NCBI GenBank assembly: GCA_965603825.1
Contig: CBFDEM010000058.1
Span: 434,001 to 498,000, forward strand
DNA length: 64,000 nt
From: Blepharisma stoltei ATCC 30299
Lineage: Eukaryota; Protista; Ciliophora
Direction: 5' to 3'
Below the pieces are notes generated by a model. That model saw only the letters and a program-made list of their open reading frames with translations, ran no database searches and had not been told where the DNA came from. Below, in pieces: positions 1-33,923 of this stretch (position 1 is the stretch's first letter; each line of letters starts with the position of its first letter). The position numbers and the translations under genes were made by a program.

Positions 1-8
1 ACAATAAA

Positions 9-1655
9 ATGGACACTCCGATTTTCCAAGACAAAGTTATTTGCATTCTCTGTGGCTTTTGTGGTTTTACTAAAGTAAGCAAAGACATCATTTCTAATAA
101 TATCGAAAAATTAGGGGGAACCACAGTCAAAAAAATTTCTCAACTCCCCGAAAATTTAACCCATCTTATAGTCCCTTACTTTTCAACTGAATCCAAACTG
201 CTTAAAACATTGAAAATTTCGCAGCTTCCGGACTGCAAAATAGTTACCCAAGACTGGGCAATTCAAAGCATAAAATTAAAAACTCTTTTGCCTGAAGACA
301 CATTTTTATGAAAATGCTATTTTCAACGACAACAAGAAAAAATGGCTGAGGTTGATGAATTAAAAAGAAAAAGTCAAATAGATGAAGAGTATCATATAAA
401 TAAACAGTTAAAGCTACAAAGTAACATAAAAATCGAAGAAAACTTTGAAGAAAATGAAAATCAAATTAAAATTGAAGAAAATCTTGAAATAAAAAATGAA
501 GAAAATGATATAAAGATTAAATTAGATCCTGATATTAAAATAGAAATAAAGCAAGAAGACGAAAGCTCTAGGTTTATTTCTGATAAAAGGAGGAGAGCGA
601 ATTGGAAAGAAGATGAACTATCGAAATTTAAATTTTACACAGGAAAACAGAGCATAGATAATAAAAACGACCATATAATACAAATGTTAGAAGAGCTTAA
701 GAATAATTATACAATCCTCAAAGATAAAGGCAGAATTATAGGCTACCAGAAAGCTATATCAGCCATAAGAAGTTTTCCAGAAAAAATAACCTCAATAGAG
801 CAGCTTAAAGGGGTTAATCAAATAGGCAAACAAACACTCCAAAAAATCAAAGAAATTCTAGAGACAGGGTCTTTGAGCAGAGTAGAAGCAATGGATGAGC
901 ATGAAAGGCTAGGCCAATTAAAATTATTTTTAAATATCTGAGGAGTTGGAACAGAAGCTGCAGAAAAACTTGTAAGAAAAGGCTATAAGACTATAGAAAT
1001 GATAAAAGCAAATCCTCCTGATTTTTTTAACGAAAATCAAAAAATTGGCCTTGCCCTTTATGACGAGCTTTTAGAAAAAATCCCCCGAGAAGAAGTCAAA
1101 GAAATTTCAGAAAAAATTACCAAAGTAGCCGAATCTTTAGCAAATGGAAGACAATTAACAGCGATTACTTGCGGATCTTACAGAAGAGGTCGCCCACTAT
1201 GTGGAGATATTGACATTTTGATGACTTTCGAAGATGGGGGAGCCCATACTGGCTTACTATCAATTTTAGTTGAAGAACTAAAAAAAATTGGTTTGGTTAC
1301 CCACACTTTAGTAATTACTGATGAAGAAATTAAAAAGAAGCACGAAAATTCCACCTTTGAAGGCATTGCAAAACTAGAAAATGGACTACATAGAAGAATT
1401 GATATAAAAATATACCCCAGAAAAACCTATGCATGGGCATTATTATATTTCACTGGATCTGCTATGTTTAATAGAAGCATGAGACTTTTCGCTAAAACTA
1501 AAGGGTTTAGGCTTTCTGACGAAGGAATATTCCCTGCAATTCGCTATAAAACGGAAACATTTACATGTGCACCAATTGCTGACTGTTATACAGAAGAAGA
1601 AATTTTTGAGTTTTTTGGGATGGCTTATAAAGCTCCGGAAGAAAGAGACATGTAA
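9..1655 (+). CDS. DNA polymerase family X (lambda-like) with N-terminal BRCT domain, 548 aa
   Basis: ORFs 9-311, 342-941 and 999-1655 share a frame and join through TGA=Trp (NI-W-GVG HhH motif at 939-941). Motifs GSYRRG..CGDID, RRIDIK and YFTGS..FNR; BRCT with 'VTQDW'. Confidence 0.93.
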
Positions 1656-1668
1656 TTTATAACGAAAA

Positions 1669-2472
1669 TTATCTAAAATATCTCATAAGCCCACCAGGGC
1701 GGGTTATAACTTGTTCTTCATCTTTAAATTTCCCTTTGATTGCCTTTTTAAATTCTTTTTTAGTGCTTTCATCCAGCTTTGAAGATTTTACAGGAGATGC
1801 AGTTAATCTTGAAGAATTTATAGACTGCGATGAAGGCGTAAATGGGATTGACGTCAAATTTAAGCTGAGTTGGGCATCTGAAGATTTTCTTGATTTTAAT
1901 ATCAAAGCGTTCTGAATCCCTCTCATTTTAAATACCAATAAAGCTGAAAGCAAATTTCTCTGATGAATTCTTCTCCATTGACGCAAAAATCCTGAGATTT
2001 TTTCTCCTCAAGAATTCATTTTTCTTTTATTTGTTTTCCGCATCGTTGTATTGCATTTTCATTTTCTTAAATTCATACGCAATATCATCCTATAAGCAGC
2101 CAATACTAAAGGTTTGAATTTTCTTATAGCGTATATTATATTCATGCACATGATTTTCTTATTCCTCAGCAAAGCTCTTTTTAATTGGTCATACATTTGT
2201 ATATAACGAATTTCTGAAATTGCTAGAAGCTTTTCATATTCAAAGTTTGTAGGGCCTTTAAATGTATATTTCTTTTTAGGGCTTCGTTTGCGTTGGATTT
2301 GATTTCGTTCTGCGAAACGCCTTGCGGCTGATTGCTTGGAAAAACTAAAAGAGTCATAAAGGCTTAAGTCTGACCCGTCAACACTGAAGTCTTGCTCAAA
2401 GATTTCAATTTTACTTGAGTTAAGAGAGCGATCTGTGTGCATTGAATCTCGCCCGGAAACATATCTCTCCAT
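1669..2472 (-). CDS. hypothetical protein (MERYVSG...), 267 aa
   Basis: ORFs 2059-2613 and 1669-1986 are in frame through TGA at 2059-2061; ATG at 2472 follows an AT-rich leader. Confidence 0.65.
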
Positions 2473-2624
2473 ATATATTCTATTGCTAGTATTAGCAAAC
2501 CCGTTAGGAATTTTCGTAAAGAGATAAAATTGAATAAATATATGAGAAACTGAGACTGAATGAGATAAGAAGTAAATAAGCGGCTTTAGAAGCGAATTTA
2601 TAAATAATATCAAGATTATAACTT

Positions 2625-3497
2625 TTAACTTTTTTCTTGGATTAATTGCTCAATAACCTTATAGACAATCTCAGGTGTTGGATTGCTTGGGAGCTTTAGC
2701 TGCAACTCTAACTCCCTTTTTTCTCTTTTACTTTGCTGCAACTGCAATTGTAAGCATTTAGTTAACATATTATCACTTGGAATTTCAGTGGTTTCTGTAT
2801 TAAAAGTTGACTTTAAATGATGCAAATGCGCTCGTGCTTGTTTTATTGAATCTAAAATGTTTGTGGACCCTTTTATGTCTTGGGGTCTTTTAATTTGGAT
2901 TTTTTCTCATGTCGCTGTCTTGCTTAAGATTTCTATATTTTTGGTTAGTCCTCCTATTGTTTCTTGTGTGAGATTTATTAAACTTCTTAGTTCTAAAATT
3001 CTGAAACCAACTTCTGTTATTTCTAATTTACTTTTTTCCGCTTTAAAACCTCGTTGCTTGTAATTAAAACTGGTCATTTCTGCTTCTTTTCATGCATTAA
3101 CAGCATTCAAAATAGCCTTAATTTCATTAGATATTTCAACAATTGCTTGGACACATAAAACTTCTTCTTTTCTCTTAAGTAGTTTACAGCTAGGACAATA
3201 AGCTGAATTTTCAGCAGAAAACTTGCCTCCTGAAGAAAAGGACAGGTCTTCAGTAAATTCATTTGAGTCTAATGTAGGAGTTTTGCTATGCAAATAAAAA
3301 GAGTTGCTGTTAAGAGAATCAGATAGAGGTTGAGAATCACGAGGAGTAATCATAGGAGACTTTAGAGATGAATTTCGGGAATTGTTTAGGAGACTTTCTT
3401 TGGATGGAGGGAGAGATTTTGTAGTTTCTCTTTTTTTGACAAGGTCTGTATGCAGGCTAATTGATTTTGAGTGAGCTCCTAGTCTTCTATCTTGCAT
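2625..3497 (-). CDS. hypothetical Ser-rich/coiled-coil protein, 290 aa
   Basis: 3090-3497 reads through two TGA codons into 2625-2825 with no TAA/TAG. Confidence 0.7.
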
Positions 3498-3705
3498 CGA
3501 AATGAAAATTATTTTGAGACTAGAGAGAGATTTATTATAGAACCTTTATTGTTGTTCATATGCTACTAAGATTATGAATTCTACTAAAAAATTATTAATT
3601 GTGCTGTTAAAATAAATTTTCCTTTCGTCAAAAGTTATATTTCACCGCTATTTTTAATATCAATAATTGTTTTAATCAATAAATTCTAATTAAATATTGC
3701 AGAAC

Positions 3706-5614
3706 TTATTTATTTTTTCTATTTTCAGATGGGACCATCAACGGTGGCACGGTTTGGTCTTTAATGTTAATTCTCATATCTTGTAAAAGTTGGGCCTGCA
3801 CTTTTCTTTCATTTTCTATTTGTTCCCTCAATGAATCTGCCATTGTAAGAAGCCCATTGATTTCTTCGTCTTGCTCTTTTAACTTATCCATTGAAGCAGG
3901 GTCAAGTTCTCCCCATATTCTTCTTAAGTGTTCATTATATTTCTCAATAGCTTCTCTTTCTAATAATTTTAAATTCTCAAACATCCCTATTGGTAAATCC
4001 TAAATTAAAAAATACCGGTGAATCTGAGATAAATGCCAGCAATCGCTGATCTGTAATTTCTCTGAAATTCCCAGACACCGAATAAGTGCTTTGCTGTATT
4101 AAAATTAAATAGTCAAAAATGATTTTGTCTAAATCGTTTTCATATATTGTTATATATTCACCTTCGTCGCCCAATCCTTCTGTTGTCCTGACCACAAAAA
4201 TTAAAAAATTCCCTTTTTCATCTCTTAAGCAGTTCATCAAATTAGTTCTGAGATCCAGCCCATCTGTCAAACTTTTATCAATTAAAATCGCTTTTAAATC
4301 GTTTTCTGACACTTTTATATAATAATAAGTGAATGATGCTTCTCTAGGGACAGAGTCTGCAATTTGGTAAATTTTCCTGATCTCTACATAATGATTTTTA
4401 AAGTTTTTTATTTGACAGATATTTTCTACAAATTTGTATTCAGGGTTACTTGCGTTAAGTTCGTTATAAATAATTTTACCTTCCGTTGAATATAGGATAT
4501 CAATTAAAGAAATCGCAACTTTTTCTTCAAATTCTAATGCTTTTATGCTTTCTTCATATAAATCAGAATCATTTTGTGCTTGCTCTTGGAGATCTCTAAA
4601 AGTTCTATCTAGCTCTTTATTGTATTTTCCTTTAACTACTTGCAAATCTTGCTTCAAAGTCTCTTCACTTTTGTGTCTTAAGGCTTTTAAGCGGGAGTTT
4701 TCTTTTAAAATTTTAGATTTCCCGTTTTCAATTTCAGTGCGTAAAGCATGCAGGTCATCTACAAGCATCCGCTGAATATATTTTAATTGCTCCTCGTTTT
4801 CTCTATTTTTGCTATCTAAATGCATAAGAAGAGTTCTATGCTCATGCTCAATAGAGCTCAACCTTTCTTGCAGCTTTAAAGCCTCTTGGATATAATCATT
4901 CTTGGCGGAGTCTCGAGTTTCTTGACTTATTCATTTTCCGTCTAAAATTTGAAGATAAGGAGATGAAATTGTGCTTAGTACGAATTCTGTATATCCTTCA
5001 AGCTCAGTTACAGGGCAAGCTTGAAAATCAACTCCTCCAAAGCTGAGGTTTCGAATTACTGAAAGCTTTGAAATCTCCCGGATGTCATTAAAAGTAGCGA
5101 TTGGGTTTTCAGATAAATGCAAATCTTGAAGATTGACTAAAGTGCTTAGCGCTTCTACTGTTTCTATTTTATTTTCTTGAAGCCATAGTTCTCGAATATA
5201 GGAATTGCTTTCTAAGTTTTCAATTTTGGTGATTTGGTTGCCAAAAAGCCAAAGCTTTGTTAAGAGCGGGCATCCTTCTAAATTTTCAATTTTTGTGATG
5301 CTATTTCGAATCAAAATCAGTTCTCTGAGCTGATGTAGTTCGTTTATAAAAGGCTCTATTGCTGGAAGTTCGCAACCTATTATACGAAGGATTTCTAGAG
5401 AATGAGCAACTCTTTCTACACCTGATAATGTAACTAATTGGCCAGTTTCGATCAGAGATAATTCTTGAAGATTGTAGCAGTAATGTAGATTGTCTAAGCG
5501 ACTAATATGAGTAAATGCAACTTCAAGCGTTTTTAATGTAGCAATTTGTTCATTTCCAGAGCAGACTTGCTAAATAAAAATTACGATTAACTCAACACTA
5601 AGCGCATCTTCCAT
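3706..5614 (-). CDS. SDS22-type leucine-rich repeat + coiled-coil protein (LRRC9-like)
   Basis: ATG 5614; 15-nt intron 5570-5584; LRRs (LWLFGNQITKIENL) with LRR cap (CPVT..EGY..FV); TGA at 4931; 16-nt intron 4000-4015 restores the frame into 3706-3984. Confidence 0.8.
4000..4015 (-). other. 16-nt spliceosomal intron (gtattttttaatttag)
   Basis: GT..AG with A at -6; its removal is needed to join two reading frames (SP|DLPIGMFEN). Confidence 0.8.
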
Positions 5615-5793
5615 TTTCAAATAAAAATAATGCTAAAGAATCTTTTTCAATACCCTGAAATAGTTTAAAATTTTATTGAATTTTGAAATAAAAGGACTCA
5701 CAAAATGCTTTATTAAATTAAAAAAATTGTTTATTTAATTATAAATTTGTTTTTAAATAATAACCAATTTTTCATTTAATTATTTAAATATTA

Positions 5794-6516
5794 TTAAATA
5801 TCATAGCATCCACCTAAATCAAGAGCTGAATTTGGGTAATCTTCAGAGAAACCTATATCAGATTTTTCATTTAAATATGGCCTTTCATAATTATTCGCAG
5901 GTTCTGATCTTAATTTCATACAATTATCGATAGACTCTGCAATAGTTTTCTGGCTTTCTATTGTCTCTTGAATGTATTCTTCAGCTTCAGCACTGACCTC
6001 TAAAATTAAGTTTTGACTTTCTTTTGTCTCTTCATTCTCTTTGCCTATATTAGCAAGATGGTGGACAATCAAGCATTCCCAAATTCTTTTTCTAATCGGG
6101 GCTTTCTCATCAAACCTAGAATCTAATTTGCAATTAAAAACCTTTTCTAGCTCTTTTTCACTATATTGTTGAGCCAGATCTTTCGCATATTTGTCAACCA
6201 TGCTGCTAAACACATTTTTGTAGAAGGACCTTAAATTTCTACTTATTCCTATATTGAAATAAGACTTTTCTTGCCGTGTAAAAACTTTAATTTCATCTTT
6301 ATTTAGAAAAGATTTCGGCCAAAATCGACTTGAATAGAGATCATAGGTGTCTTTGCTCAAGTTTAATTTCAGCATGTTGTAAAAATTGTGGTAAAAGGAA
6401 TTAGTAAGTTTTTGGTTTAAAGATCGGGAATCTTTTTTTTTGGGGCTCATGAAATAATGCAATAAAAATCCAATAGGATTACAAGGTCTTCCTCTGCTCT
6501 TGTAAGTTTTTACCAT
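5794..6516 (-). CDS. hypothetical protein with N-terminal AT-hook-like RGRP motif
   Basis: 240-aa ORF ending in TAA; start uncertain because the frame is open further upstream. Confidence 0.65.
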   Translation of the reverse strand: MVKTYKSRGRPCNPIGFLLHYFMSPKKKDSRSLNQKLTNSFYHNFYNMLKLNLSKDTYDLYSSRFWPKSFLNKDEIKVFTRQEKSYFNIGISRNLRSFYKNVFSSMVDKYAKDLAQQYSEKELEKVFNCKLDSRFDEKAPIRKRIWECLIVHHLANIGKENEETKESQNLILEVSAEAEEYIQETIESQKTIAESIDNCMKLRSEPANNYERPYLNEKSDIGFSEDYPNSALDLGGCYDI

Positions 6517-7146
6517 ATTTTTTATAGATATGAATGATAACTCATATTGCTTTGGACATTTGATATCTTTCTCTTGAAAACGACAAAAGCCTGTTGTATT
6601 TTCATAATTTAGGGATTTGATAATGATTCATAAATTGGATATTTTATTAAATAATAAAAGTTTCTGTATTTTGAAAAAGTTGCTTATTATATACCCTTGC
6701 TTGCTTATTTTCTGGACTTAGAAGAGAAGGATAAGCCAGATAGAGCATTTAATGAAATATTATTGATTCTCAAATTTATGAATTTAATCTTATTAAAAAG
6801 CAATCTAAAATAGGTATTTTATGTAATTATATCTGAAGCAATGCTTCCTGTGTCTATACTTTTACTTCTTCTAGCTCTAATGCATTTAGATCACAGAAGA
6901 AACCTTAAAATTGCTCATATCCTAAAAATGTCGATCTTCAAATCATTACCTTTGGCGGCTGTTACAAAATTTCATTCGAAAGATTTAACTTTTTATATGA
7001 GAATGCACAATGCTTTGTTTTTACAATAAGCCATCAATTCTTTTGTCTTTACCTAAAAATGATTTCTTTTCTTAAAATTCGTTTCAGATTTTCTCTATTC
7101 CCGCATCAAATTTGTTCCATCTTAAAAACGTTACAATAATTAAAAT

Positions 7147-9822
7147 ATGATAAATACAAAGAAAGCAGCCTGTCTACCGCTCATCAGCAGATCTGCAAGG
7201 CCTAAGTCAAAATCGTCAAACATTTCTTTGGCATCAAGTCCTACTTCCCCAGACATTGATATTCACCTTTTCGAAAGAAAAGAAAAAATTAGGCAAATCC
7301 ACACAAGCCAAAACAAATTTTCAAGATATGTCGGCTCAATGAGCAGCAAAGACTCAGATTCCAACTCAAGCGGAAGTCCAGATAATGCTTCTGCTAAGCT
7401 CAACTTCTTTGAGTCTTATAAGAAAATAGGAAAAGAGACTGAAAGAGTCGAGTTCAGAAAAATGAAACAGTCGCCAGAAATTGCATTTCTCAAAGAAATT
7501 GATAAAGGAGGTTTAAGTCCTAAACCTTTTGGGCTCATCAAGTCTGGCACACCACAGTCAAGAAGCTCTAAATCAAGAAGCCCACAGTCAAAAAGTCCTC
7601 AGTCAAAAGGCTCCGTTGTTGGGTCATTCGATTTAAGAAATATCGGAATGGGAGATACTTATGCAAAGGCATTTTCGAAAGGAATTAAGCATATTCCACA
7701 GGTAGAAGAGCTAAATTTAAAAGAAAATCGACTCAGTGAGAAAGGTGCTTTGAAAATTTTGTCAAAGTTAGTAGAAAAGAAAACAAAATACCTTGTTTTG
7801 ACTGGGAATCATTTAGGTGAGCAGTCAGTACAAAAAATCGTTGAAATTTTAGATAACCCAAAATCTTATCTGAAGCACCTAAGCCTAGAAAACACAAAAC
7901 TAAGCGAATCCGCTATTATTCAGCTTTGTAACAGCTTAAAAGAAAATACTACCCTGACCAGATTGAATTTGGCGAAAAATGAAATCAGAAATGGAGCTGT
8001 CAAAGCCATAGGTGAGATGCTCTCTAAAAATTACGGCCTAAGATATTTAGATCTTCACTGGAACTTAATCAGAGGCGACGAAGCAATCTATTTATTCAAT
8101 GGCCTAGAGCAAAACCGATACCTAAGACACTTAGACTTGTCATGAAATGCAATTGGCAACTCCACTAACCTAGAAATCATCAATTCCATTGGTAAAGCTT
8201 TCAAAGAAAACACACTCCTAATCCATGCAGATTTATCATATAACAATTTTAATCTCCAAGAATGCGAAATCCTTGGAAAATTTTTATATGATAATCACAC
8301 ACTTATAGGTCTACACATGCTTGGAAATGATTGTAAAATCAATTCCAAAGGCTTTATTATTCCAATGAAATGCAGAAAGGAAAAAGACGCCCACAACTTC
8401 CAGAGAGTCATTAATGAACCTACTTTTATGATTCATAATGAAGAAAGCTCGAACTGCTGGATCTGTGAAAGGTGGGTCGAGGCAGAATTTACTGTAAAAT
8501 CAGAAAAAGCTGCTTTTCTGCACTTAGAATGCGATGGATTTGCAGGAGAACTAATGGAAAACAATAATAATGGGACTTTTTATATAAAAAGAGTGGTACC
8601 CCCTGGAGTTTTGAAGTTCTTCTATAGCAATGAAAATGGTGTAATTGCACTAGAAGATACCCCTAGTGAGCCTTATGACAAACCTATAGAAGTTATTATA
8701 GGTGCTAATAAAAAGGTCTTAGAAACTGTCAATGTAAGCTATGCAGAAGGAATTGTATGTGACCCTAGAAATCTTTTTGAAACACAAATTAGGATCCCTG
8801 GGACAACTTATACGATTAGTAAGCCCCCTCCAGCAGAGCCTGAAGAAATCATATATGAAAGGATCATATGGGATATCTCTATTAGTTCCTTTAAAGACTA
8901 CAAATTTGATACAGAGCAAAGACTTCAAGCTAATTTTGAGACAGATTTTAAGCATTCTAGGATAAATAAATTTGTTAAGGATCCACTTGATGTAATGAAC
9001 TCTAAAGAGTGTTTGGAAAAGGTTTATCATCAGTTTAAAGAAACCTATAGGCATTTAGCAGCATTGGGTGGGAATGATTTGTTCTGCTTTGGCTCTAATA
9101 TTTTTTCTGATTTTCTAACACAATGCAATGTGTTTGATGAAAATTTCGGAATAAATGATCTCGGTATCTGCTGGAATGCGACCAAATGCCAGAGGTCGAA
9201 ATGTGAAGCTGTGATAGGAAACAGACTTTCTAAGCATGAATTCATGGAAATTATTGCTAGGATAGCAAATGATAAATACGTCAGAAACAATCTATGCAAA
9301 AATACAGCTGAAGCTTTGCAGAGATTATTTGATGAGAGCTTGATTCCTATTATGTCTCAATTTGATACAAATAGATGGAGAATGGAGAAATACTGCTGTG
9401 AAGAAGTTGACCTAGAGCTTAAAGTCTATAAGCCAATTTTTGATGAAATATTTAGACTTTACACAGGGAAAATCTTTTGCCAGTCAAAAGGATTCATGTC
9501 ATTAGACGAATTCAGAAATCTGTGTATTGAGTCTGGACTATTGAATGACTCAAGAGAAATTGATTTTTGTGCTTATAAGGCAATTATGTGCCATAAAGAA
9601 GAGATTCTTGAGAAAAAACATGTGAAACTCAGCTATGTAGAATTTTTAGAAGCAATTTGTAGAGTTTTCGATCAGTGTGGGAATAAAAACGAGAAATTAA
9701 GAGACAAGGTTCGAGCAGGGGTTACTCAGCTTATCAATTTGTGCTCTGATGCTATAAAAGGATCATTTACTATACCAACAGATGAGGCCTATTTTAAACT
9801 TATGTATCGGCCTAAACTTTAA
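7147..9822 (+). CDS. RI-type (NLRC3-like) LRR protein with central beta-domain and C-terminal EF-hand-like helical region, 891 aa
   Basis: 7147-8145 and 8317-9822 join in frame through TGA in 'LDLS-W-NAIG', matching the preceding repeat 'LDLHWNLI'. Confidence 0.85.
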
Positions 9823-9926
9823 ACTAATTAATTATTACCAAATTTATTCAAATTTAGGAATTGAATAATTAAGTATTTATAAAATTTAAAGAAGGCTATA
9901 ATTATAAAAATATTAACTTACTGAAG

Positions 9927-11237
9927 CTATAATTTAAATAGCGATGTATGTAAGGCAAATAGCACTTCTTTATCAATTGCTTTTAGCTGCTTATAGACAG
10001 TCTTTCTTACTGCTACTGCATAAGTAAATATTGTCTTCTCTACATCACTCTTAAAAAAGTTTGATGCTTTATAAACTTCAGCTAAAGGCCATCTATTTCC
10101 TCCATACACAACTTGGCAAATATAAGACCTATAAATCAAAAGAGAATTTGCAAAATCATGCTGAGTTTCTCCATCGAAAGGTAGCATCTGGAAGAAAGGT
10201 CTCAAATTTTTATTGCTAACTTCAGTGCGTTCCCAAGCTCCATAATTCCCTCTGATATTCCTTAGTAAATTTACATTGATTTCTACCGCATTTAATTGGA
10301 ATTTGCAGGATCCATCAGATAAAATTTTTTCATAACAAATTTCATAGGTGATGCTTACTGTAAAACTATCATCATGATTGTTAGGAATCGTAAACCCATA
10401 CATAGATAGCAAATCTATATTTGGTAGTTGCTTATATTCATACACAAGCTCATTCCCTCTATTTAAAGTTCTATCTGCGATTAATGTAAATCCTGGTGGC
10501 ATTTTGTCATCAAATACAATTGAAGAAGTTTTCATGGTCGAGTTTAGAGGTCTTGGCCAATGATTGATAAAATCAATTCCAGGGATTAACACAGGATAAT
10601 TATACTTTTCATCGAGATCTTTAAAGCCATACATTCTCATCATTTCTGAAGCTGGGTATAATATAGCTCGCGTTTGGATAACAGCATCTGCCCATAAAAA
10701 TGCTTGATAATTGAACATCTCAGCTGGCAAGTCGTAGCGGTTTTTAATTTTCGATAAAACAAGCTCATGGTCAGCTGTAATATTCCTTATAAAATAGGAT
10801 CTTGTATAGTCATAAATCCCTAATTTTTCAAACACATCAAATTCGGCATCACTTCATAATAAAGGTGTTGTGTACTTTAGAGGGAAATTGTGCACAAACT
10901 CCGTGAGAAATGGCCCTCTAGGTGCTATAAATTTTTCATAGAGAATTCTCATACGAAGCATTGAGTAAGGGGAAATACCTTTTAGGACTGATGTTAAAGG
11001 GAAAGGAGTGACTGGCTCGAGAGTGTCAGCTAAAGGAATTTTAAAGAGAACTTCCCCTTCTTTGATGTTAGATAAAAGCTTTATTCCTATACCTCGGCCT
11101 TCAAAATAAGCTATTCCATGACTATTGATGTGGGACCGAAGTTGACAGCTGAAAGAGCTTGCTTGATCCCTTGTCGTTGTGAGTGGAACTTCATATGCGT
11201 GTGCAACAATAAGAAACGAAATAAAATATAGCATCAT
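9927..11237 (-). CDS. SET-domain methyltransferase (Rubisco-LSMT/SETD3-SETD4 class) with predicted signal peptide, 436 aa
   Basis: GRGIG, PGIDFINH and 'ELVYEY...NIDLLSMYGF' motifs; TGA at 10854-10856; N-terminus MMLYFISFLIVAHA|YE. Confidence 0.8.
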
Positions 11238-11379
11238 TTCTGAATTATCAGTCAATTTTGTTATATAAAAAATTAATACTAGGAAAATCATAAAATTCTT
11301 TTTTCAATTCAATTAGCAAATGCACATTAAAAAACGAAAAAATTATTTATCAAGAAGCCTTCTAATTTATTTATTTAAG

Positions 11380-11757
11380 ATGTCAAATATCGATGAAGAA
11401 AACAAAGTCCCTCATTTTCGCAAAGTTTATGAGCAAAAGAAATCAGACCGCGAAGTCCAGTTACAAACAGATCAATATCCTCAAGACAGCTTCGAGTTAG
11501 GCCCTATGTCTTTTGATGAAGAAGTCAAAGCTCCTATAGGAATGATCATTATGCTAATTACAAGTTTTTTATTATCTTTTGTCCTTATTATTATAGGTGC
11601 GATACTTTATGAGCAAAAGCATGATACGAAAAATGCAGTTGGAATATGAGTTTTGGCCTTTTTAGTAATGATTCCGGGGCTATTTTCAATTTACAAAATA
11701 ATTGTGATTCTTGCACCGAAAACCCCGCAGGATAGAGTGAACATTTTACATCCTTAA
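11380..11757 (+). CDS. small two-TM protein, TMEM230/TMEM134-like
   Basis: ATG 11380; two hydrophobic helices; TGA 11647 reads into W-VLAFLVMIPGLFS; TAA 11755-11757. Confidence 0.7.
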
Positions 11758-11810: not shown

Positions 11811-12875
11811 ATGGAATCATCAATTTTTGAGGTTGATGGGTCTTTATATGAAGGGGGTGGCCAAATAATGAGAGTCGCTTTATGTTTAGGGATTATTAAA
11901 CAAATTCCAGTCACAATCAAAAATATTCGTGCTGGCCGTGATAGGCCTGGTCTTGCCCGAAGCCATCTTGCTTCAGTTCTGATCTTACAGCAAATCTGCA
12001 ACGGTCGCTTAGAAAACGCAGAGCTTGGGTCGACTACATTAACATTATACCCTAGCCAAATCTCTTCAGGGACTTTTATAGCTGATTGTGGCTCTTCAGG
12101 AAGCATAACCCTTATGCTCCAAGCAATCCTTCCTGTATTAATAAAAACTTCTTCAATATTGATTTTACGTGTACTTTTAATTTAGGGCGGCACTGATGTC
12201 CCGTTTTCTCCAACGACACATTTTATTCAAAATTCTCTGCAGCCATTTCTAAATAAAATCGGGGTAAAATTCAGCTATGAAGTAAAAAGGTATGGATTTA
12301 ACCCTATAGGAAGAGGAGAAGTAGAAGTTCGTACTGAGCTTTGTGAGGAAATTAATGGAATTGATATTTTATATAATAAAATTTCAAGAAATATTGAAGC
12401 AGAAATAGTATATAGCAGAAAAAGCAAAGGAAATATGAACTATGATGAAGAAATAAGGAAAGTTGTTGAGAGAGTTGGTAAGAGATATACAGTAAATGAG
12501 CTAGAAGTTAATAGAGAAATAATAAGTGTAAGAGAAGTCGATGCGGAATGCCATGGGGTAGTGGTAAATGTATGAAATAAAAGCGAAAATGGATGCTTTT
12601 ACCACAAATCTGAGGTTGGAATTTTTAAAGGAAAAAATGAATGGGAGAAACCATGTAGAGATCTGAAAAATTGCATAGAATCGGAAGCTTGCATCTGTGA
12701 AGAGTTGCAGGACCAGCTTTTAATATTTTTAGCAATGGCAAGTAGCCCTTCGAGAATAAAAATTAATCAGGCTACTGATCATTCTTTAGCTGTAATTGAG
12801 TTAATAAACAGGGTTGGCTTGGCAAGAATTTCAATGAATGAAGGGATTTTGGAAATAATTCCGCAGTCTAGGTAA
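11811..12875 (+). CDS. RTCA: RNA 3'-terminal phosphate cyclase
   Basis: DGS..EGGGQI.R, IRAGR.RPGL..H and GSITLMLQ motifs; 15-nt intron 12171-12185 then GGTDVPFSP; YGFNPIGRGEV; DQL and TDH (adenylated His position); TAA 12873-12875. The 3' half is missing from the ORF track. Confidence 0.92.
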
Positions 12876-12997
12876 TTTATGCTTTACATAATAATGTTCT
12901 ATAATGATTATTTCAGTTCTAACGATAAATTTAAATCTTTATACTTTATCTAGCATAATGTAGGCACTTTATAAACTGGTTATTATATGTCTTTTTA

Positions 12998-13069
12998 AGC
13001 GAAGTGGCGCAGTGGAAGCGTGCTGGGCTCATAACCCAGAGGTCGATGGATCGAAACCATTCTTCGCTA
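12998..13069 (+). tRNA. initiator tRNA-Met (CAT)
   Basis: AGCGAAG/CTTCGCT acceptor stem with A1:U72, CTGGG-ctCATaa-CCCAG anticodon arm, eukaryotic initiator T-loop GATCGAAA, downstream T-run. Confidence 0.97.
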
Positions 13070-13070
13070 C

Positions 13071-13076
13071 TTTTTA
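13071..13076 (+). terminator. Pol III terminator (T-run) of tRNA-iMet
   Basis: TTTTTT immediately downstream of the tRNA. Confidence 0.7.
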
Positions 13077-13388
13077 TTGTTTTTGCTTTTTTAAAAATGA
13101 AAATGCTTTAATAAGCTAATGAATAGAGAAGCAGGCTTTGTTTTTGGATTACTAGAATTATTTGATAGAAAATTGTTAGTGAGAAGGCATAGTAAATTTT
13201 AATATAACATTGAGTTAAATTGATCGCAAGCAATATTTTTTCTCAAATCATCTTAGAAGTAGTTAAAGGACTGAGAAGGCAAATATCTGCATATAGCGCT
13301 ATGTGCTTTATAGCTTTTTTAGTTATATTACCTAATCAGCCCTGACCATTTTCTCAAAAGTATGGACTCAATCAGATAATAATAGGAC

Positions 13389-14987
13389 ATGGACTATTTT
13401 CAAAGAACTCCAAATGCTGTGATTTGCATTATTTTTTCCTATTTAAATTCCACAGAAGTCGCAAGACTCGCTTCGCTAAACAAATTATTTTACGAATGCA
13501 CCAGCGAATGCCTATACAACATCTTCACACAAATGGGATGGGGCAATCCAAAAATTTCAGAAGCAATTCAAGCATTTGGACAGATTTACAGTAAGCAAGT
13601 GATCGTTTATAAAGACTGGGACTCAGATCTTATCCAGCAAGTCCAATTCCCAGGGCTAAGAAGTGTTAAGGAAATCAAATTTGGGAACCTCCATACCGCG
13701 ATTCTAAAGCATGATGGAGTCGTTCTGTCAGATCTAGGAAAAAATGAAGTCACTCCCTGCATGTACAACATAAAGCAAATCGAATGCAACATGGATAGAA
13801 TTATTGGCCTTACTGAATTCAATAAAATAGAATGCTTGTCAGTCATAGGCGGGCAGCTCATAAAATCCAATTGGGAAGGTGAAGGAAAAATCACCGCGAT
13901 CGCTGTTGGAGCTTCGTTTTTTGTAGGAACTGAAGAAGGAAGAGTTTTTGCGTTCAGCGAAACCCTTTCAGCAGAAGTCAACTTTGCGACGCCTAACACA
14001 GCTGCAATTAAAGACTTAAAAGCCACTCCAAAGGTTCTGCTTATTTTAACAGTCACAGGCAAGCTTTATCAATGTGAACTTTTCAATTTTACAGCTACAC
14101 AGCTATTCCCTACAAAATTCATTGCATTGATAGCACTTGGCTATTCACACTCTATTGCTCTAGCTAGAGAAGAATTCCCACCGCTGAAAGATTGAAATTC
14201 TCAGTTTCTGTGTGAATGGATGCAAAAAGTCGGCTTTGAAGACTGCTGCAGACTAATCACAAACCATCAAATAGCAGGAAGTGAACTAGATAATATGGAT
14301 GAAAATTATCTTTTTGAGACTTTAGGGATTAAAGAAGCAAATAGAAGAAACAAATTAAATCTGGAACTCAGTAGAGTTAAAAACTCAAGTGTTTCTATTA
14401 GCTGTGAACTATATGGCTGGGGCAAAAATTTAGAAATGCAAATTTGTACAGATACAAATATAGTGAAAAAGCCAGTGAAAATGAATTTACCTGAGTTTTA
14501 CGCTGAAGAAACTATTAAAGCAATTCATTGCAATAAATTTTTTACATTTTTATTTACAAGTTTTGGAAGGATTTTTGTAAAAGGAGGAGTGCCTTTCCGA
14601 AAGCTCACAAAAGACGAAAAAAAGAATTTTGTGCACTGGAGAACAATAGAAGACAAATTTTCTCAAAATTCCAATTGCAATATTTTATCAATATCAACCT
14701 CTACATATCAAATAGGAATCATATATAAAAATTTTTCAAAGAAAACTAGAGAAAAAACAAGAATGAGCATGGGTGATGACGTATTGAATGAAATCTTGAA
14801 AAATCCAAGATGGAATCCATCAGAGTTTGTGATAGGGTATACTGACAGATTTTTAGGCATTTTAGAACTTTCCGCAATTGAATTTAGTCAAAGCGAAATT
14901 ATTAAGCATAGGATCCAATACTTCAAAAGAAATGGAGAAATTGTTTGGGATCGACGCACGAGATTAGATCTAATGAAAATAAATTAA
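13389..14987 (+). CDS. F-box + RCC1-like repeats + SAM + C-terminal MJ1316 (LENG9/DUF504-type) domain protein, 532 aa
   Basis: F-box (TPNAVICIIFSYL..EVARLASLNK); RCC1-like GNLHTAIL, GYSHSIAL, LYGWGKN; SAM starting at TGA 14193 (W-NSQFLCEWMQKVG...HQIAG..L...LGI....R.KL); MJ1316 (FVIGYTDRFLGILE...HRIQYFKRNGEIVWDRRTRLD). Confidence 0.85.
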
Positions 14988-15001: not shown

Positions 15002-16687
15002 ATGTTCAATGAAGCATATGATTTAAAAGCTGACCTGAACATATGCATGCAAACATTAAATTCAGAAAAATTTAGAGAGCTTTTAAATTTAGCAAGAATT
15101 GATTTATATAAACTGACTGACCATTTAGGGTTTAATATTTTCCACGATATCGCATCTTGTATAATAAAAGAAGAAAAACTTGCTGAATATTTAGAAATCT
15201 TAAAAAAAGCCTTTGTAGAGAGATATCCTGATGACTGGCAAACAATGATTCTCCCAATGCTGAACTCTCAGGCTGTTCATGATAGAAATTCTCCTCTGCA
15301 CTGTGCAATCCTAAATAACAGAAAAGTAAAAAATATATAGAAAATCATTGAAGAATTCATTAAATTAGGATCAAACTTTAGACTGAAAAACGTTCACGGA
15401 CAAAATGTAATGCATTTATCTGTAATTGCTGGAAATATACAACTATTAGCCTATTTCAAATACAAACACGGAATGCCTATCAATGAGCTTGATAATGATG
15501 GAAAGAGCCTTCTTCATCTCGCAATTTCGAATAATAATGAATATATTTTATCGCTACTACTAACATGGATAGACGATTTAGAGATAAAAGATAAAGAAGG
15601 CCGAACACCTTTACATGCCGCTGTGCTTTCTAGGGAATACTATTTAGTTAGAAGTCTCCTTGTTGCTGGAGCTAAAAGGAAAGCTAGAGATAACAGCGGC
15701 GTTACTCCCCTAGATTTAGCAATTCAAAATGGCGCTTTCGAGTTGATAAGGATGCTGGTAATTTAGATTTAGAAAGAACCATTAGTGATCTGCAAGCTTA
15801 ATCCTTGCCAGTCTCCATTGAAGCCTATGGAGAAGACTTTTAGTGCTTATATTTTGTATATTTTTATATTCGTATCAAGGTATGGCTTGGTGTTTTATTT
15901 TATGCTCCCTCACTATCCTGTGCATGTTATTATTATTTCTTGCATTATTTTTATTATGTCATTTTTATCTTTTTTTTTAGTCAGTTGTATGAATCCTGGA
16001 TATCTATATCAAAAGCCAGATCAAGATTTACTTGTAAGTTTAATATAGACTCTATATGAAAAAATACATCCAGAGTTTTTATGTCCGAAGTGTATAGTTA
16101 AGCGAACTAGAACTACTAAGCATTGCCAGCACTGTGGTAGATGTGTTGATCGATATGATCATCATTGTCCATGAATTCGTAATTGTGTAGGAAGAAAAAA
16201 CTATAGAGTTTTTATCTGATTTATCACTATTTGCTTGATTGACTTCACATATCATATCGTTATAAGTCTCCTCGAATTTTTCAAAGTCTTCCATAGCGAA
16301 TTTAAAAGTTTTGAGTCCAATTCAGAATTCCATAGTGCTGCGACCTTGATGATTTGTATTATAAATTTTATTTGCATGCTATTTATTATTCCAGTAGTTT
16401 ATATCCAATATACAAATATTTTAAGAAAGACGACTACACATGAAAGGTTTGCATATCATAAGGAAAACAGGTCGACATTTATAAGTATTGATATTACAAA
16501 TATGCCATCTGCAAGTGAAACAACAGAAAGGGCGTCAATAGCAATGAAAGAAGCCAATGAATTTGAAAATTTCCAAAAAATGCGTAAAGATTCAAAAATT
16601 TCATGCTGGAAAAGATTCAAAAAAAGAAAATCAAGCAACTTAAGTCTCTCAACTGTCATAGAAAAATCCCTTATTAATGATATGTAA
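15002..16687 (+). CDS. ankyrin-repeat DHHC palmitoyltransferase (ZDHHC13/17/Akr1-like)
   Basis: Ankyrin repeats; 15-nt introns 15326-15340, 15758-15772 and 16034-16048; CxxC..KHCQHCGRCVDRYDHHCP-W(TGA 16172)-IRNCVG; TTxE motif (TTHE). Confidence 0.92.
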
Positions 16688-17254: not shown

Positions 17255-18502
17255 ATGAAGGCCATCTTAATTTGTTGTCTTTTGATTCTAGTGGCCAGCC
17301 ACGAAAGTGATTACCAAAACCTACTTTATGGAATTTTGCAAGGATCAGAACTTATCACTCCTATTACTCCTCTAAATTGTAAAACATTAATATCCCGTTT
17401 CCAAAAACCTTATTTATTTGACAGGCCTTGAAAAAAGGTGATTTCTGATACAAGCGTGCTTTCAGAAACTTGCGGATTTAATGCTGCTTATGAGACTTTG
17501 CAAGGCTTTATGCAATTTCCTCAAATTTTTGAAAAATTCCTTATAAAACTTGATGATTCTATTGAAAATGATAGACTTTTCCCTGAAAGCAACCTACAAA
17601 AATACGGGATATCAGTAGGAATGATTATGAAGCCCTTTTTGGCTTTGGTTATACCTACTGTGCTGGACTTTGAGTTTTCTAACAAATTTATGTCCTTGAA
17701 ATCAGGAAAGCATCCTATAGCGATTTTTCATGGCCTAGGTGATAGCTGTTATTACTCGGGAAATATTGAATTTACAGAATACATTCGCAAAAACGTTGGA
17801 ACCTATACAAAATGCGTTGAAATTGGAGATGGGTCTAACAGCAGCTGGCTTGAGCCTTTCCAATCGCAAGCAATTCAAGCATGCGAAAGAATTAAAGAAG
17901 AAACAGAATATTCTAATGGACTTAGCATTATTGGCTTATCTCAAGGTGGATTAATTGCAAGATATATTGCAGAAGCATGTGGAGTTCCAGTTCATGTAAT
18001 TGTAACAATAGGAACACCTCATATGGGAGTAGCAACCATGCCCTATTGTTTAAATGGATTTTACTGTGATGTCATAAATGATGTCACTAGTAAAGATGCC
18101 TATGGTCTTTTTAGTCAAAGTAATATAGGGCCTCCTGGGTACTTTAATGACCCAAATAATTACGAAAGCTATTTAGAAAATAGCAGTTTCTTAGCTGATT
18201 TGAATAATGAGAAATTTATCAATACCACTTTTATAGAGAAAATGCAAAGCCTGAACCATTTAGTTCTCATTAAATTTACAGAGGATTCTGCAATTTCTCC
18301 AATAGAAAGTGCATGGTTTGGGTACTTTGAAGGGGGAAATGTCGTCCCCTTTAATCAAACTAAAAGCTATTTAAAAAACACACTTGGACTACAGCAACTT
18401 TATTCCGAAAATAAGCTTCATTTTATTGAGATCGAAGGTGAGCATTTAAATTTCAATGAAGAAGAGTTTACGGAACTGATTTTACCTTATCTTTTGGATT
18501 AA
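17255..18502 (+). CDS. PPT1: palmitoyl-protein thioesterase 1-like, with signal peptide and an extra N-terminal domain, 415 aa
   Basis: ATG 17255 (MKAILICCLLILVA) in frame via one TGA; HGLGDSC, GLSQGG (Ser), EDSAISP (Asp), GEHL (His). Confidence 0.88.
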
Positions 18503-32442: not shown

Positions 32443-32780
32443 AATTAATTAATTAATTAAAATTATAAATTTTTTATTGAATCTCCTATTACATAGCTTT
32501 AATAAATAAAATCTATTACTAATAAACCTTTGCCTTTTTGAAGCTTATAATATAAAATGTATAGAATATTTCAAAAAAATAATTAAAATAGTTTCTTTAA
32601 AATAAATCATATATGGTTTTATTTTTTGATAATTTTTTTAAATTTCAAACATGATGCTTTAGCTGTTTATTTTTAATAATAATTATCTTTATTACTTATA
32701 TCAATTGAGTCACATATTTCTTTCATATCTAATATTTCCACTCGTTATATGGAGAAACATTAAGTAAATTATCATAAAAA

Positions 32781-33923
32781 ATGGGATGCTGTTTTAGTTG
32801 CCTCAAAAGTGATTCGAAAGATCCAGCAAAAGCTCCTCTAGTAACCATTGATGGTAAAAAAGCAGAAGAAATGGATTCTGCAATTACAGATGCAGCTCCA
32901 TCTCCATCGCATCCTATTTGTCTAGACGATTTTCAAATAGAAAGAGTTTTAGGCAAAGGCGCATTCGGAAAAGTGTTTTTAGTCACGAAAAAAGACACAG
33001 GGAAGCTTTATGCGATGAAATGCTTGAAAAAAGAAATGATTGAGCAGAGAAATCAAAGGGTTCACACCAAAACTGAAAGAGAAATTTTAGGCGATGCGGA
33101 CAGTCCATTTATAGTTCAGCTTCATTTTGCTTTCCAGACGCCTGAAAGATTGTATATGGTTCTGGATTTTATTAACGGTGGCGAATTATTCTTCCATCTA
33201 AGAAGATCAACAAGGTTCACAGAGCAACGAAGTAGATTTTATTCCGCTGAAATTTTGCTAGCCCTGGACTATTTACATGCTCATGGAGTTATTTACAGAG
33301 ATTTGAAACCTGAAAATATTTTGCTTGATTCTGAAGGACATATAAAATTGACAGATTTTGGGCTTAGTAAACAGTTTTTTGGAAATGAAAGCGAAAATAA
33401 AGCTTTTTCATTCTGTGGGACACCTGAATATTTGGCTCCAGAAATTTTGAAAGGAACAGGCCACGATCAAGCTGTTGATTTTTGGAGTTTAGGAGCTTTA
33501 TTATATGAAATGCTAGCTGGAGCTCCACCTTTTTATTCAAAAAATCGAGATCAGATGTTCAGAAATATGTTAACAAAACCAGTTGATATGAAGCCTCATT
33601 TTTCAGCTCAAGCAGTCGATTTATTGAAAAATTTGCTGCAAGTTGATGTAATTTTTATTTAGCCAAGAAAACGACTATCTTCAACCTCTGAAATTCAAGC
33701 TCATCCATTTTTTGAAGGAATGGACTGGGACAAGCTTAGTAAAAAAGAAATCGAGCCTCCATTCAAGCCAAAAGTGACAGGACCTCGAGATTTAAGAAAT
33801 TTCGATAGGATGTTTACAGATGAAACACCAGAAGAAAGCTTGATTACCACTAACTTAGATTCACAGCAAAAAGCAGCTCATAAGTGGGAAGGGTTCACTT
33901 ATCATGATCCTGCACACTTATAG
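32781..33923 (+). CDS. AGC-family Ser/Thr kinase (S6K/SGK/Akt-like) with MGCC dual-acylation motif
   Basis: GKGAFG, YRDLKPEN, DFG and SFCGTPEY motifs; intron 33648-33662; AGC tail PPFKP..NFD..F and hydrophobic motif WEGFTY. Confidence 0.93.

Follow-up and report, generated by a model that had tools for sequence, protein, structure and literature searches.

The MJ1316 domain has been described as recognising RNA 2',3'-cyclic ends and as being fused to RNA-repair domains (PMC6514570), its binding of RNA 2',3'-cyclic phosphate ends being a prediction drawn from earlier work. A described setting for an RNA 3'-phosphate cyclase, the RtcA-type enzyme that makes such ends, is the rtcBA operon of Escherichia coli (RtcA, RtcB, RtcR). 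The present work concerns a 64,000-nucleotide stretch of the macronuclear genome of the ciliate Blepharisma stoltei ATCC 30299 (contig 58, C58, positions 434001-498000; hereafter the window), in which an RtcA-type cyclase gene, an initiator tRNA-Met gene (tRNA-iMet) and a gene for a protein with F-box, RCC1-like, SAM and MJ1316 domains adjoin one another. An earlier note on this DNA had proposed that a maker of the cyclic end, a possible substrate and a possible reader were brought together here as an RNA damage module. The domain calls and the writer/reader logic of that proposal stand, and a linkage of the same two families in archaea speaks for it, but neither conserved linkage nor a dedicated tRNA substrate was borne out; the cluster is probably a recent juxtaposition and not a conserved RNA-damage module.

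Like its E. coli counterpart, the window RtcA carries the catalytic His and the phosphate-binding Arg and Glu residues. In contrast to rtcBA, the B. stoltei locus is no operon, no RtcB was detected, there is no RtcR, and the partner is a predicted ubiquitin-ligase adaptor rather than a ligase. A second likeness is found in Thermoproteota, where the same two families, RtcA and MJ1316 (UPF0248, DUF504), adjoin. There, MJ1316 is a stand-alone frame of about 80-140 amino acids that in most cases converges on rtcA and frequently runs in line with a gene for a NOG1-type GTPase, whereas in B. stoltei it is a C-terminal domain encoded in the same orientation as RtcA, a tRNA gene intervenes, and relatives do not share the linkage. 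Among F-box proteins, the nearest named Atlas clusters are of the FBXO24 type, which resemble the window protein in having an F-box at the N-terminus and an RCC1-like propeller after it, but have neither a SAM insertion nor MJ1316 in their family lists. Finally, other eukaryotic MJ1316 fusions (LENG9/AKAP7-like 2H/CCCH proteins, PAP-like proteins with or without EEP, and RWD-UPF0029 proteins) have the same domain with the same conserved residues; the partner in these fusions is an RNA-end enzyme, as opposed to the predicted ubiquitin-ligase adaptor of the window protein.

The macronuclear assembly of B. stoltei ATCC 30299 has been described as 41 Mbp in 64 telomere-to-telomere contigs with 25,711 genes, with UGA encoding Trp and introns typically of 15/16 bp (PMC9942806). 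The genome searched here comprised 41,464,486 bases in 64 contigs, and the window is AT-rich, reads TGA as a sense codon and has 15-nucleotide introns. Database searches were carried out with single exons or stop-free pieces, each searched separately, and joined models (spliced, with TGA as Trp) were used only for local BLAST, alignment and tree building. The three neighbours claimed by the earlier note were all recovered, and all lie on the plus strand. RtcA consists of exon 1 (11811-12170, 120 codons; Pfam RTC and TIGR03399), a spliceosomal intron of 15 nucleotides read from the sequence (12171-12185, GT..AG, with an in-frame TAG inside), and exon 2 (12186-12875, 229 codons and a TAA stop, with TGA as Trp at 12573-12575; Pfam RTC). 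The tRNA-iMet gene (anticodon CAU) follows at 12998-13069, with an ARAGORN end at 13069/70 and a polymerase III terminator of five T residues, again read from the sequence, at 13071-13075. The F-box/RCC1-like/SAM/MJ1316 gene occupies 13389-14987 (532 codons, with TGA as Trp at 14193-14195 and the stop at 14985-14987), and its MJ1316 domain (PF04457) spans 14763-14954. They are best read as three independent transcription units arranged head to tail on a gene-dense macronuclear contig.

The decisive case for synteny is the nearest relative, Logan sample SRR24908292, in which TGA is also read as Trp and the MJ1316 F-box gene is 61% identical to that of the window. On one of its contigs (L018), the MJ1316 F-box gene is followed by the same ankyrin-DHHC and thioesterase genes as in B. 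stoltei, so that the two species are collinear downstream; this contig starts only 156 nucleotides before the ATG of the MJ1316 gene. A second contig (L024) was reached through the leucine-rich-repeat gene at 7147-9819 of the window, which the relative has kept, and is collinear with window positions 1-11754. The synteny anchor immediately upstream of RtcA, an open reading frame for a small predicted membrane protein (11320-11757, plus strand), has a counterpart at L024 13090-13554 that is 69% identical. In the relative, a tRNA-iMet gene follows this gene after about 155 nucleotides without an intervening RtcA, and the contig runs on for only 122 nucleotides beyond the tRNA. The loose ends of the two contigs (122 + 156) amount to 278 nucleotides, close to the 318 nucleotides from the tRNA to the ATG in the window. 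The RtcA that the relative does possess (P0174) is of the type found on contig 46 (C46) of B. stoltei and lies on a different contig of the same sample. When the intergenic DNA of the relative was compared with that of the window, alignment scores were at shuffle level, too low to reveal a clean insertion or deletion.

Further afield, neither RtcA nor a tRNA was found near the MJ1316 gene in five other lineages (P0001, P0003/P0153, P0004, P0006 and P0016) within flanks of 1.5-10 kb. These flanks came from metagenome and Logan contigs and were examined through the Pfam lists of called genes, by tblastn with both Blepharisma RtcAs and with ARAGORN. The five lineages show only that the linkage has not been maintained across the family, since they have no neighbours in common with the window. 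The conserved linkage that would be expected of a module is therefore missing both at the syntenic site of the nearest relative and from the flanks of five further lineages. Chance adjacency in a compact genome, which the earlier note had kept as its alternative, is now favoured given the absence of RtcA from the relative's syntenic site: the juxtaposition of RtcA, tRNA and MJ1316 is lineage-specific and probably fortuitous, though with room left for other explanations. The placement of RtcA beside the tRNA and MJ1316 genes would then be a by-product of local rearrangement and not a selected, co-regulated module.

The intervening tRNA gene was examined in its own right. It was found by ARAGORN and matches the Rfam tRNA model with 63.6 bits. 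Eukaryotic initiator tRNAs have a CAU anticodon, an A1:U72 pair, three G:C pairs in the anticodon stem, and A54 and A60; the window gene, as read from its sequence, has A1:U72, a GGG/CCC anticodon stem and the T-loop AUCGAAA with A54 and A60, confirming the initiator identity that had been claimed for it. Five copies of this gene, identical or 97% identical, are present on four contigs, and the window copy is one of these five polymerase III genes. Nucleases that produce cyclic ends often act on transfer RNAs, and it is tempting to see in the tRNA a dedicated substrate that is cleaved or end-modified and then sensed by its neighbours, as the earlier note had suggested. This three-part arrangement is very improbable and close to refuted. 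The only evidence that the locus offers for it is that the tRNA gene lies between the other two, whereas other contigs carry four more initiator genes, identical or 97% identical, the place of a tRNA gene reveals nothing about the partners of a mature product that acts in trans, the relative has the tRNA at the syntenic site without RtcA, and no tRNA is seen at other MJ1316 loci. The tRNA-iMet gene is most likely incidental: it is a polymerase III unit of its own, complete with terminator, and if anything it separates the two protein-coding genes.

Several observations weigh against a fortuitous origin. To begin with, L018 and L024 do not overlap, so that an RtcA in the part that neither contig covers, downstream of the relative's tRNA and ahead of its MJ1316 gene, is unlikely but conceivable. 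Copy numbers are also suggestive: PF04457 has one match in the whole 41.5-Mb genome and RtcA-type genes number two, which gives a naive chance of about 1.6e-4 that the lone MJ1316 gene has an RtcA gene as its immediate protein-coding neighbour (computed with the published 25,711 genes (PMC9942806), and ignoring the look-elsewhere effect of a genome-wide scan). This figure is small, but the finding came from such a scan, in which a handful of suggestive neighbour pairs is expected by chance. A second suggestive pair, an ankyrin-DHHC palmitoyltransferase gene and a palmitoyl-protein thioesterase gene, is in fact present in the same window. Likewise, the window RtcA is a diverged paralog whose 349 codons have stayed open, and this could mean a specialised role. 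Finally, there is the archaeal neighbourhood, which makes a functional link between RtcA and MJ1316 credible and suggests that their adjacency could be useful.

Starting from archaeal RtcA loci, MJ1316 open frames were found near rtcA in Methanosuratincola and in one Bathyarchaeia genome. The shared order of the block is an MGMT-like gene (minus), RtcA (plus), in some genomes a NOG1-type GTPase gene (minus), MJ1316 (minus) and a proteasome subunit gene (plus); examples are L029 9385-14063 and L038 9034-11672. In L029, the MJ1316 frame overlaps the beginning of NOG1, and this points to a link with ribosome biogenesis. Of 151 Thermoproteota genomes sampled, 54 had MJ1316 above cut-off together with RtcA, and in 18 of these the two genes lie 63-1372 nucleotides apart; chance alone would give about 0.1 such close pairs. 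The distribution of distances is strongly bimodal, as the genes are at least 160 kb apart in 21 of the 54 and on different contigs in 15. Sixteen of the 18 close pairs are convergent, and linkage must have changed at least three times on the RtcA tree (a clade of 14, one pair and one singleton). Elsewhere among the archaea sampled (Thermoplasmata, Methanobacteriaceae, Methanotrichaceae, Iainarchaeum and others), no MJ1316 was found beside RtcA at the RtcA locus. The RtcA-MJ1316 neighbourhood of archaea may be part of the basis for the name of the MJ1316 domain. It does not show that the ciliate adjacency has been selected.

Could the B. stoltei pair be a remnant of the archaeal one, kept here and lost elsewhere? 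The conserved block of MGMT, RtcA, (NOG1 GTPase), MJ1316 and proteasome subunit genes is what lends this idea its appeal. Such an origin would demand independent loss in every other sampled eukaryotic lineage, the sister species included; moreover, MJ1316 stands alone in the archaeal genomes examined, as against being the C-terminal domain of a multidomain family in eukaryotes, and the RtcA linked to it in B. stoltei is the paralog, not the conserved copy. Inheritance of the linkage from archaea is highly improbable on these grounds.

It is possible, if rather unlikely, that the pair arose within the lineage and does have a function, an RtcA paralog having been recruited beside the MJ1316 F-box gene and co-regulated with it. 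In such a writer-reader pair, RtcA would make cyclic ends, MJ1316 would read them, and an SCF (Skp1-cullin-F-box) ubiquitin ligase would ubiquitylate a bound factor, for example on stalled ribosomes. The single-copy MJ1316 gene beside one of only two RtcA genes and the recurrent neighbourhood in Thermoproteota both argue for it, as does an RtcA paralog that is intact yet has changed residues. The company that MJ1316 keeps elsewhere points the same way: in 20 other sampled eukaryote-type MJ1316 proteins the partners were SAM/RCC1 or else enzymes that act on cyclic phosphates and RNA ends, namely RWD-UPF0029 (IMPACT-like), PAP-like nucleotidyltransferases with EEP nuclease or 2H domains, and AKAP7/LigT-type 2H phosphoesterases with CCCH. 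None of these 20, however, is a fusion of MJ1316 with RTC. The linkage is moreover absent in the closest relative and five other lineages, a polymerase III gene with its own terminator sits between the RtcA and MJ1316 genes, and the archaeal pairs are mostly convergent and hence not co-transcribed. The fuller proposal, by which the RtcA paralog and the SCF-type F-box/MJ1316 protein turn RNA 3'-phosphate damage into a ubiquitin signal, with adjacency reflecting co-regulation and with a counterpart in the archaeal neighbourhood, is unlikely. Fortuitous juxtaposition is preferred to both.

The cyclase itself deserves closer description. The earlier note had called it an RNA 3'-phosphate cyclase with the His of its TDH motif intact, and both profile matches and alignment bear this out. 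Pfam RTC (PF01137) matches the three stop-free pieces of the gene with E values of 4e-33 (exon 1, 4.3e-33), 2e-12 and 8e-7. The RtcA model TIGR03399 gives 5e-38, 5e-14 and 1e-8 for these pieces, its full-length cut-off being out of reach when pieces are searched apart, whereas the Rcl1 model TIGR03400 gives 2e-8, 0.045 and no match. Judged from these matches, the gene at 11811-12875 belongs to the RtcA type and not to Rcl1. Exon 1 aligns with residues 5-110 of E. coli RtcA, with E14, Q18, R21, R40, R43 and H52 conserved, and the TDH His falls in the column of the His that is adenylylated in RtcA from Pyrococcus and E. coli (E. coli His309). D287 and Q288 (E. coli numbering) are also conserved; 1qmh and 4o89 served as references for the active-site alignment, which was made either directly or by way of the C46 paralog. 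Other positions have changed. The window copy has Glu in the column of E. coli Tyr284, which we take to be an adenine-pocket residue, and Asn at Y161, and its FYPxGGG motif reads FNPIGRG; the aromatic residue of the Tyr284 column is retained in the C46 copy, P0174 and P0175. RTC_insert (PF05189), which archaeal RtcAs show, was not reported for the window pieces, where the region is present, diverged and interrupted by TGA. With its adenine-pocket residue altered, the enzyme would probably still convert 3'-phosphate RNA ends to 2',3'-cyclic phosphate via a His-AMP intermediate.

Three genes make up the RTC family in this genome, namely the window RtcA, the C46 RtcA and an Rcl1-like gene on contig 28 (C28) that lacks the catalytic His. 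The C46 RtcA (L002 1462-2562, where L002 is G000:C46:246261-250268) is the better conserved of the two RtcAs and has its intron at the same position as the window copy; a B. stoltei protein in NCBI (P0173) is 99.7% identical to it. Within the translated C46 exon 2 there are 5 residues that P0173 does not have, and its annotators may have called a second 15-nucleotide intron. In a small tree, the C46 copy, the NCBI protein and the relative's P0174 form a clade with 99/97 support, and the window copy falls outside. Because the window RtcA is 51% identical to the C46-type clade, compared with 71% between the two orthologs, and because of its place outside that clade, it appears to be an older or fast-evolving diverged paralog; its open frame of 349 codons argues for continued selection. 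The C46 and window neighbourhoods in B. stoltei share no neighbours and show no wider paralogy.

A word search with RtcA exon 1 returned five candidates, none of them significant, under a length filter that leaves out full-length RtcAs. Likewise, a window-type RtcA from SRR24908292 was not found in two word searches, a weak negative given their length filters. RtcB (PF01139) had no match in the 41.5-Mb genome, although the same search gave matches in ten control genomes; an RtcB-type ligase would therefore not seal the cyclic ends that RtcA makes in B. stoltei. A profile search for the Trl1-type ligase (PF09511) was silent in this genome and in the control genomes as well. No entries for the cyclase or for MJ1316 were found in the supplement of PMC9942806.

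The gene at 13389-14987 has proved more interesting than its position. The MJ1316 domain that had been proposed at its end was matched by PF04457 with 49.8-53.8 bits, above the cut-off of 26.3, and it retains the G, E, H, W, DRF, R and Y columns of the family (alignment A3). SAM_2 is also clear (E 5e-8). The RCC1-like and F-box matches are weak in the window copy, with the F-box at 19.1 bits, below the cut-off of 24.3; in the ortholog P0001 F-box-like reaches 30.8 bits, above the cut-off, and across the aligned family F-box-like was found in 8 members, MJ1316 in 9 and SAM_2 in 7. An AlphaFold (AF2) model of P0001, with a pLDDT (predicted local distance difference test) of 81.8, starts with helices, continues with blades of beta-strands into which a helical SAM domain is inserted, and finishes with a small C-terminal domain. 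In Foldseek, the blades on both sides of the SAM insert align with single RCC1-like propellers (RPGR, RCC1, HERC2), and the same model also finds Fbw7-Skp1. The four-domain architecture read by the earlier note holds up in this way, with SAM and MJ1316 clear in the window copy, the F-box supported through P0001 and the 8 members, and the RCC1-like part through Foldseek. As modelled, the window protein is an F-box followed by one RCC1-like propeller interrupted by SAM, with MJ1316 at its C-terminus.

An exhaustive profile search, with the C-terminal 263 residues of the window protein as query, assigns it to a conserved protist family whose members have about 525 amino acids; the window gene is the only copy in this genome. 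Members of about 520-530 amino acids align over their full length, with identities to the window protein of 49% (P0001), 42% (P0003), 35% (P0004), 36% (P0006), 30% (P0016) and 28% (P0020). Four further proteins (P0009, P0010, P0011 and P0014) have a SAM, RCC1 and MJ1316 core and do not align with the N-terminal half of the 525-amino-acid family; on account of these four, the core is wider than the F-box family. By its domain content, the F-box-MJ1316 protein may read an RNA end as the substrate receptor of an SCF ligase, in which case recognition of that end, predicted to be a 2',3'-cyclic phosphate, would lead through the F-box (SCF adaptor) to ubiquitylation of an associated protein.

Were the pairing of RtcA and MJ1316 functional after all, B. 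stoltei would provide the first case in a eukaryote of an RtcA tied to a predicted reader of cyclic ends. The pairing would also join RNA-end chemistry to ubiquitylation and offer a handle on the cellular role of eukaryotic RtcA, a question that is sharper in an organism whose genome gave no RtcB match. Of more lasting value than the adjacency are two results: the F-box/RCC1-like/SAM/MJ1316 protist family, as a candidate RNA-end-sensing ubiquitin-ligase adaptor, and the recurrence of RtcA and MJ1316 as neighbours in Thermoproteota.

The other window neighbours of the RtcA and MJ1316 genes are unrelated to RNA. Upstream, an unannotated gene of about 454 codons (9930-11291, minus strand) lies between the leucine-rich-repeat and membrane-protein genes. 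In its place the relative has an EF-hand/protein-kinase gene (L024 11347-13035, minus strand), whose best match in the window, at 32778-33659, is a paralog. The species thus differ in the gene just upstream of the one for the membrane protein, and the spot has therefore undergone more than one rearrangement. On the far side of the MJ1316 gene, downstream, are an ankyrin-repeat gene with a C-terminal DHHC palmitoyltransferase motif (15002-16687, plus strand) and a palmitoyl-protein thioesterase gene (17255-18502, plus strand; Palm_thioest E 1e-66), so that genes for writing and for erasing protein palmitoylation adjoin. The relative, too, has both of them downstream of its MJ1316 gene (ankyrin-DHHC at L018 1727-3446, thioesterase at L018 6011-7264), with extra genes between them.

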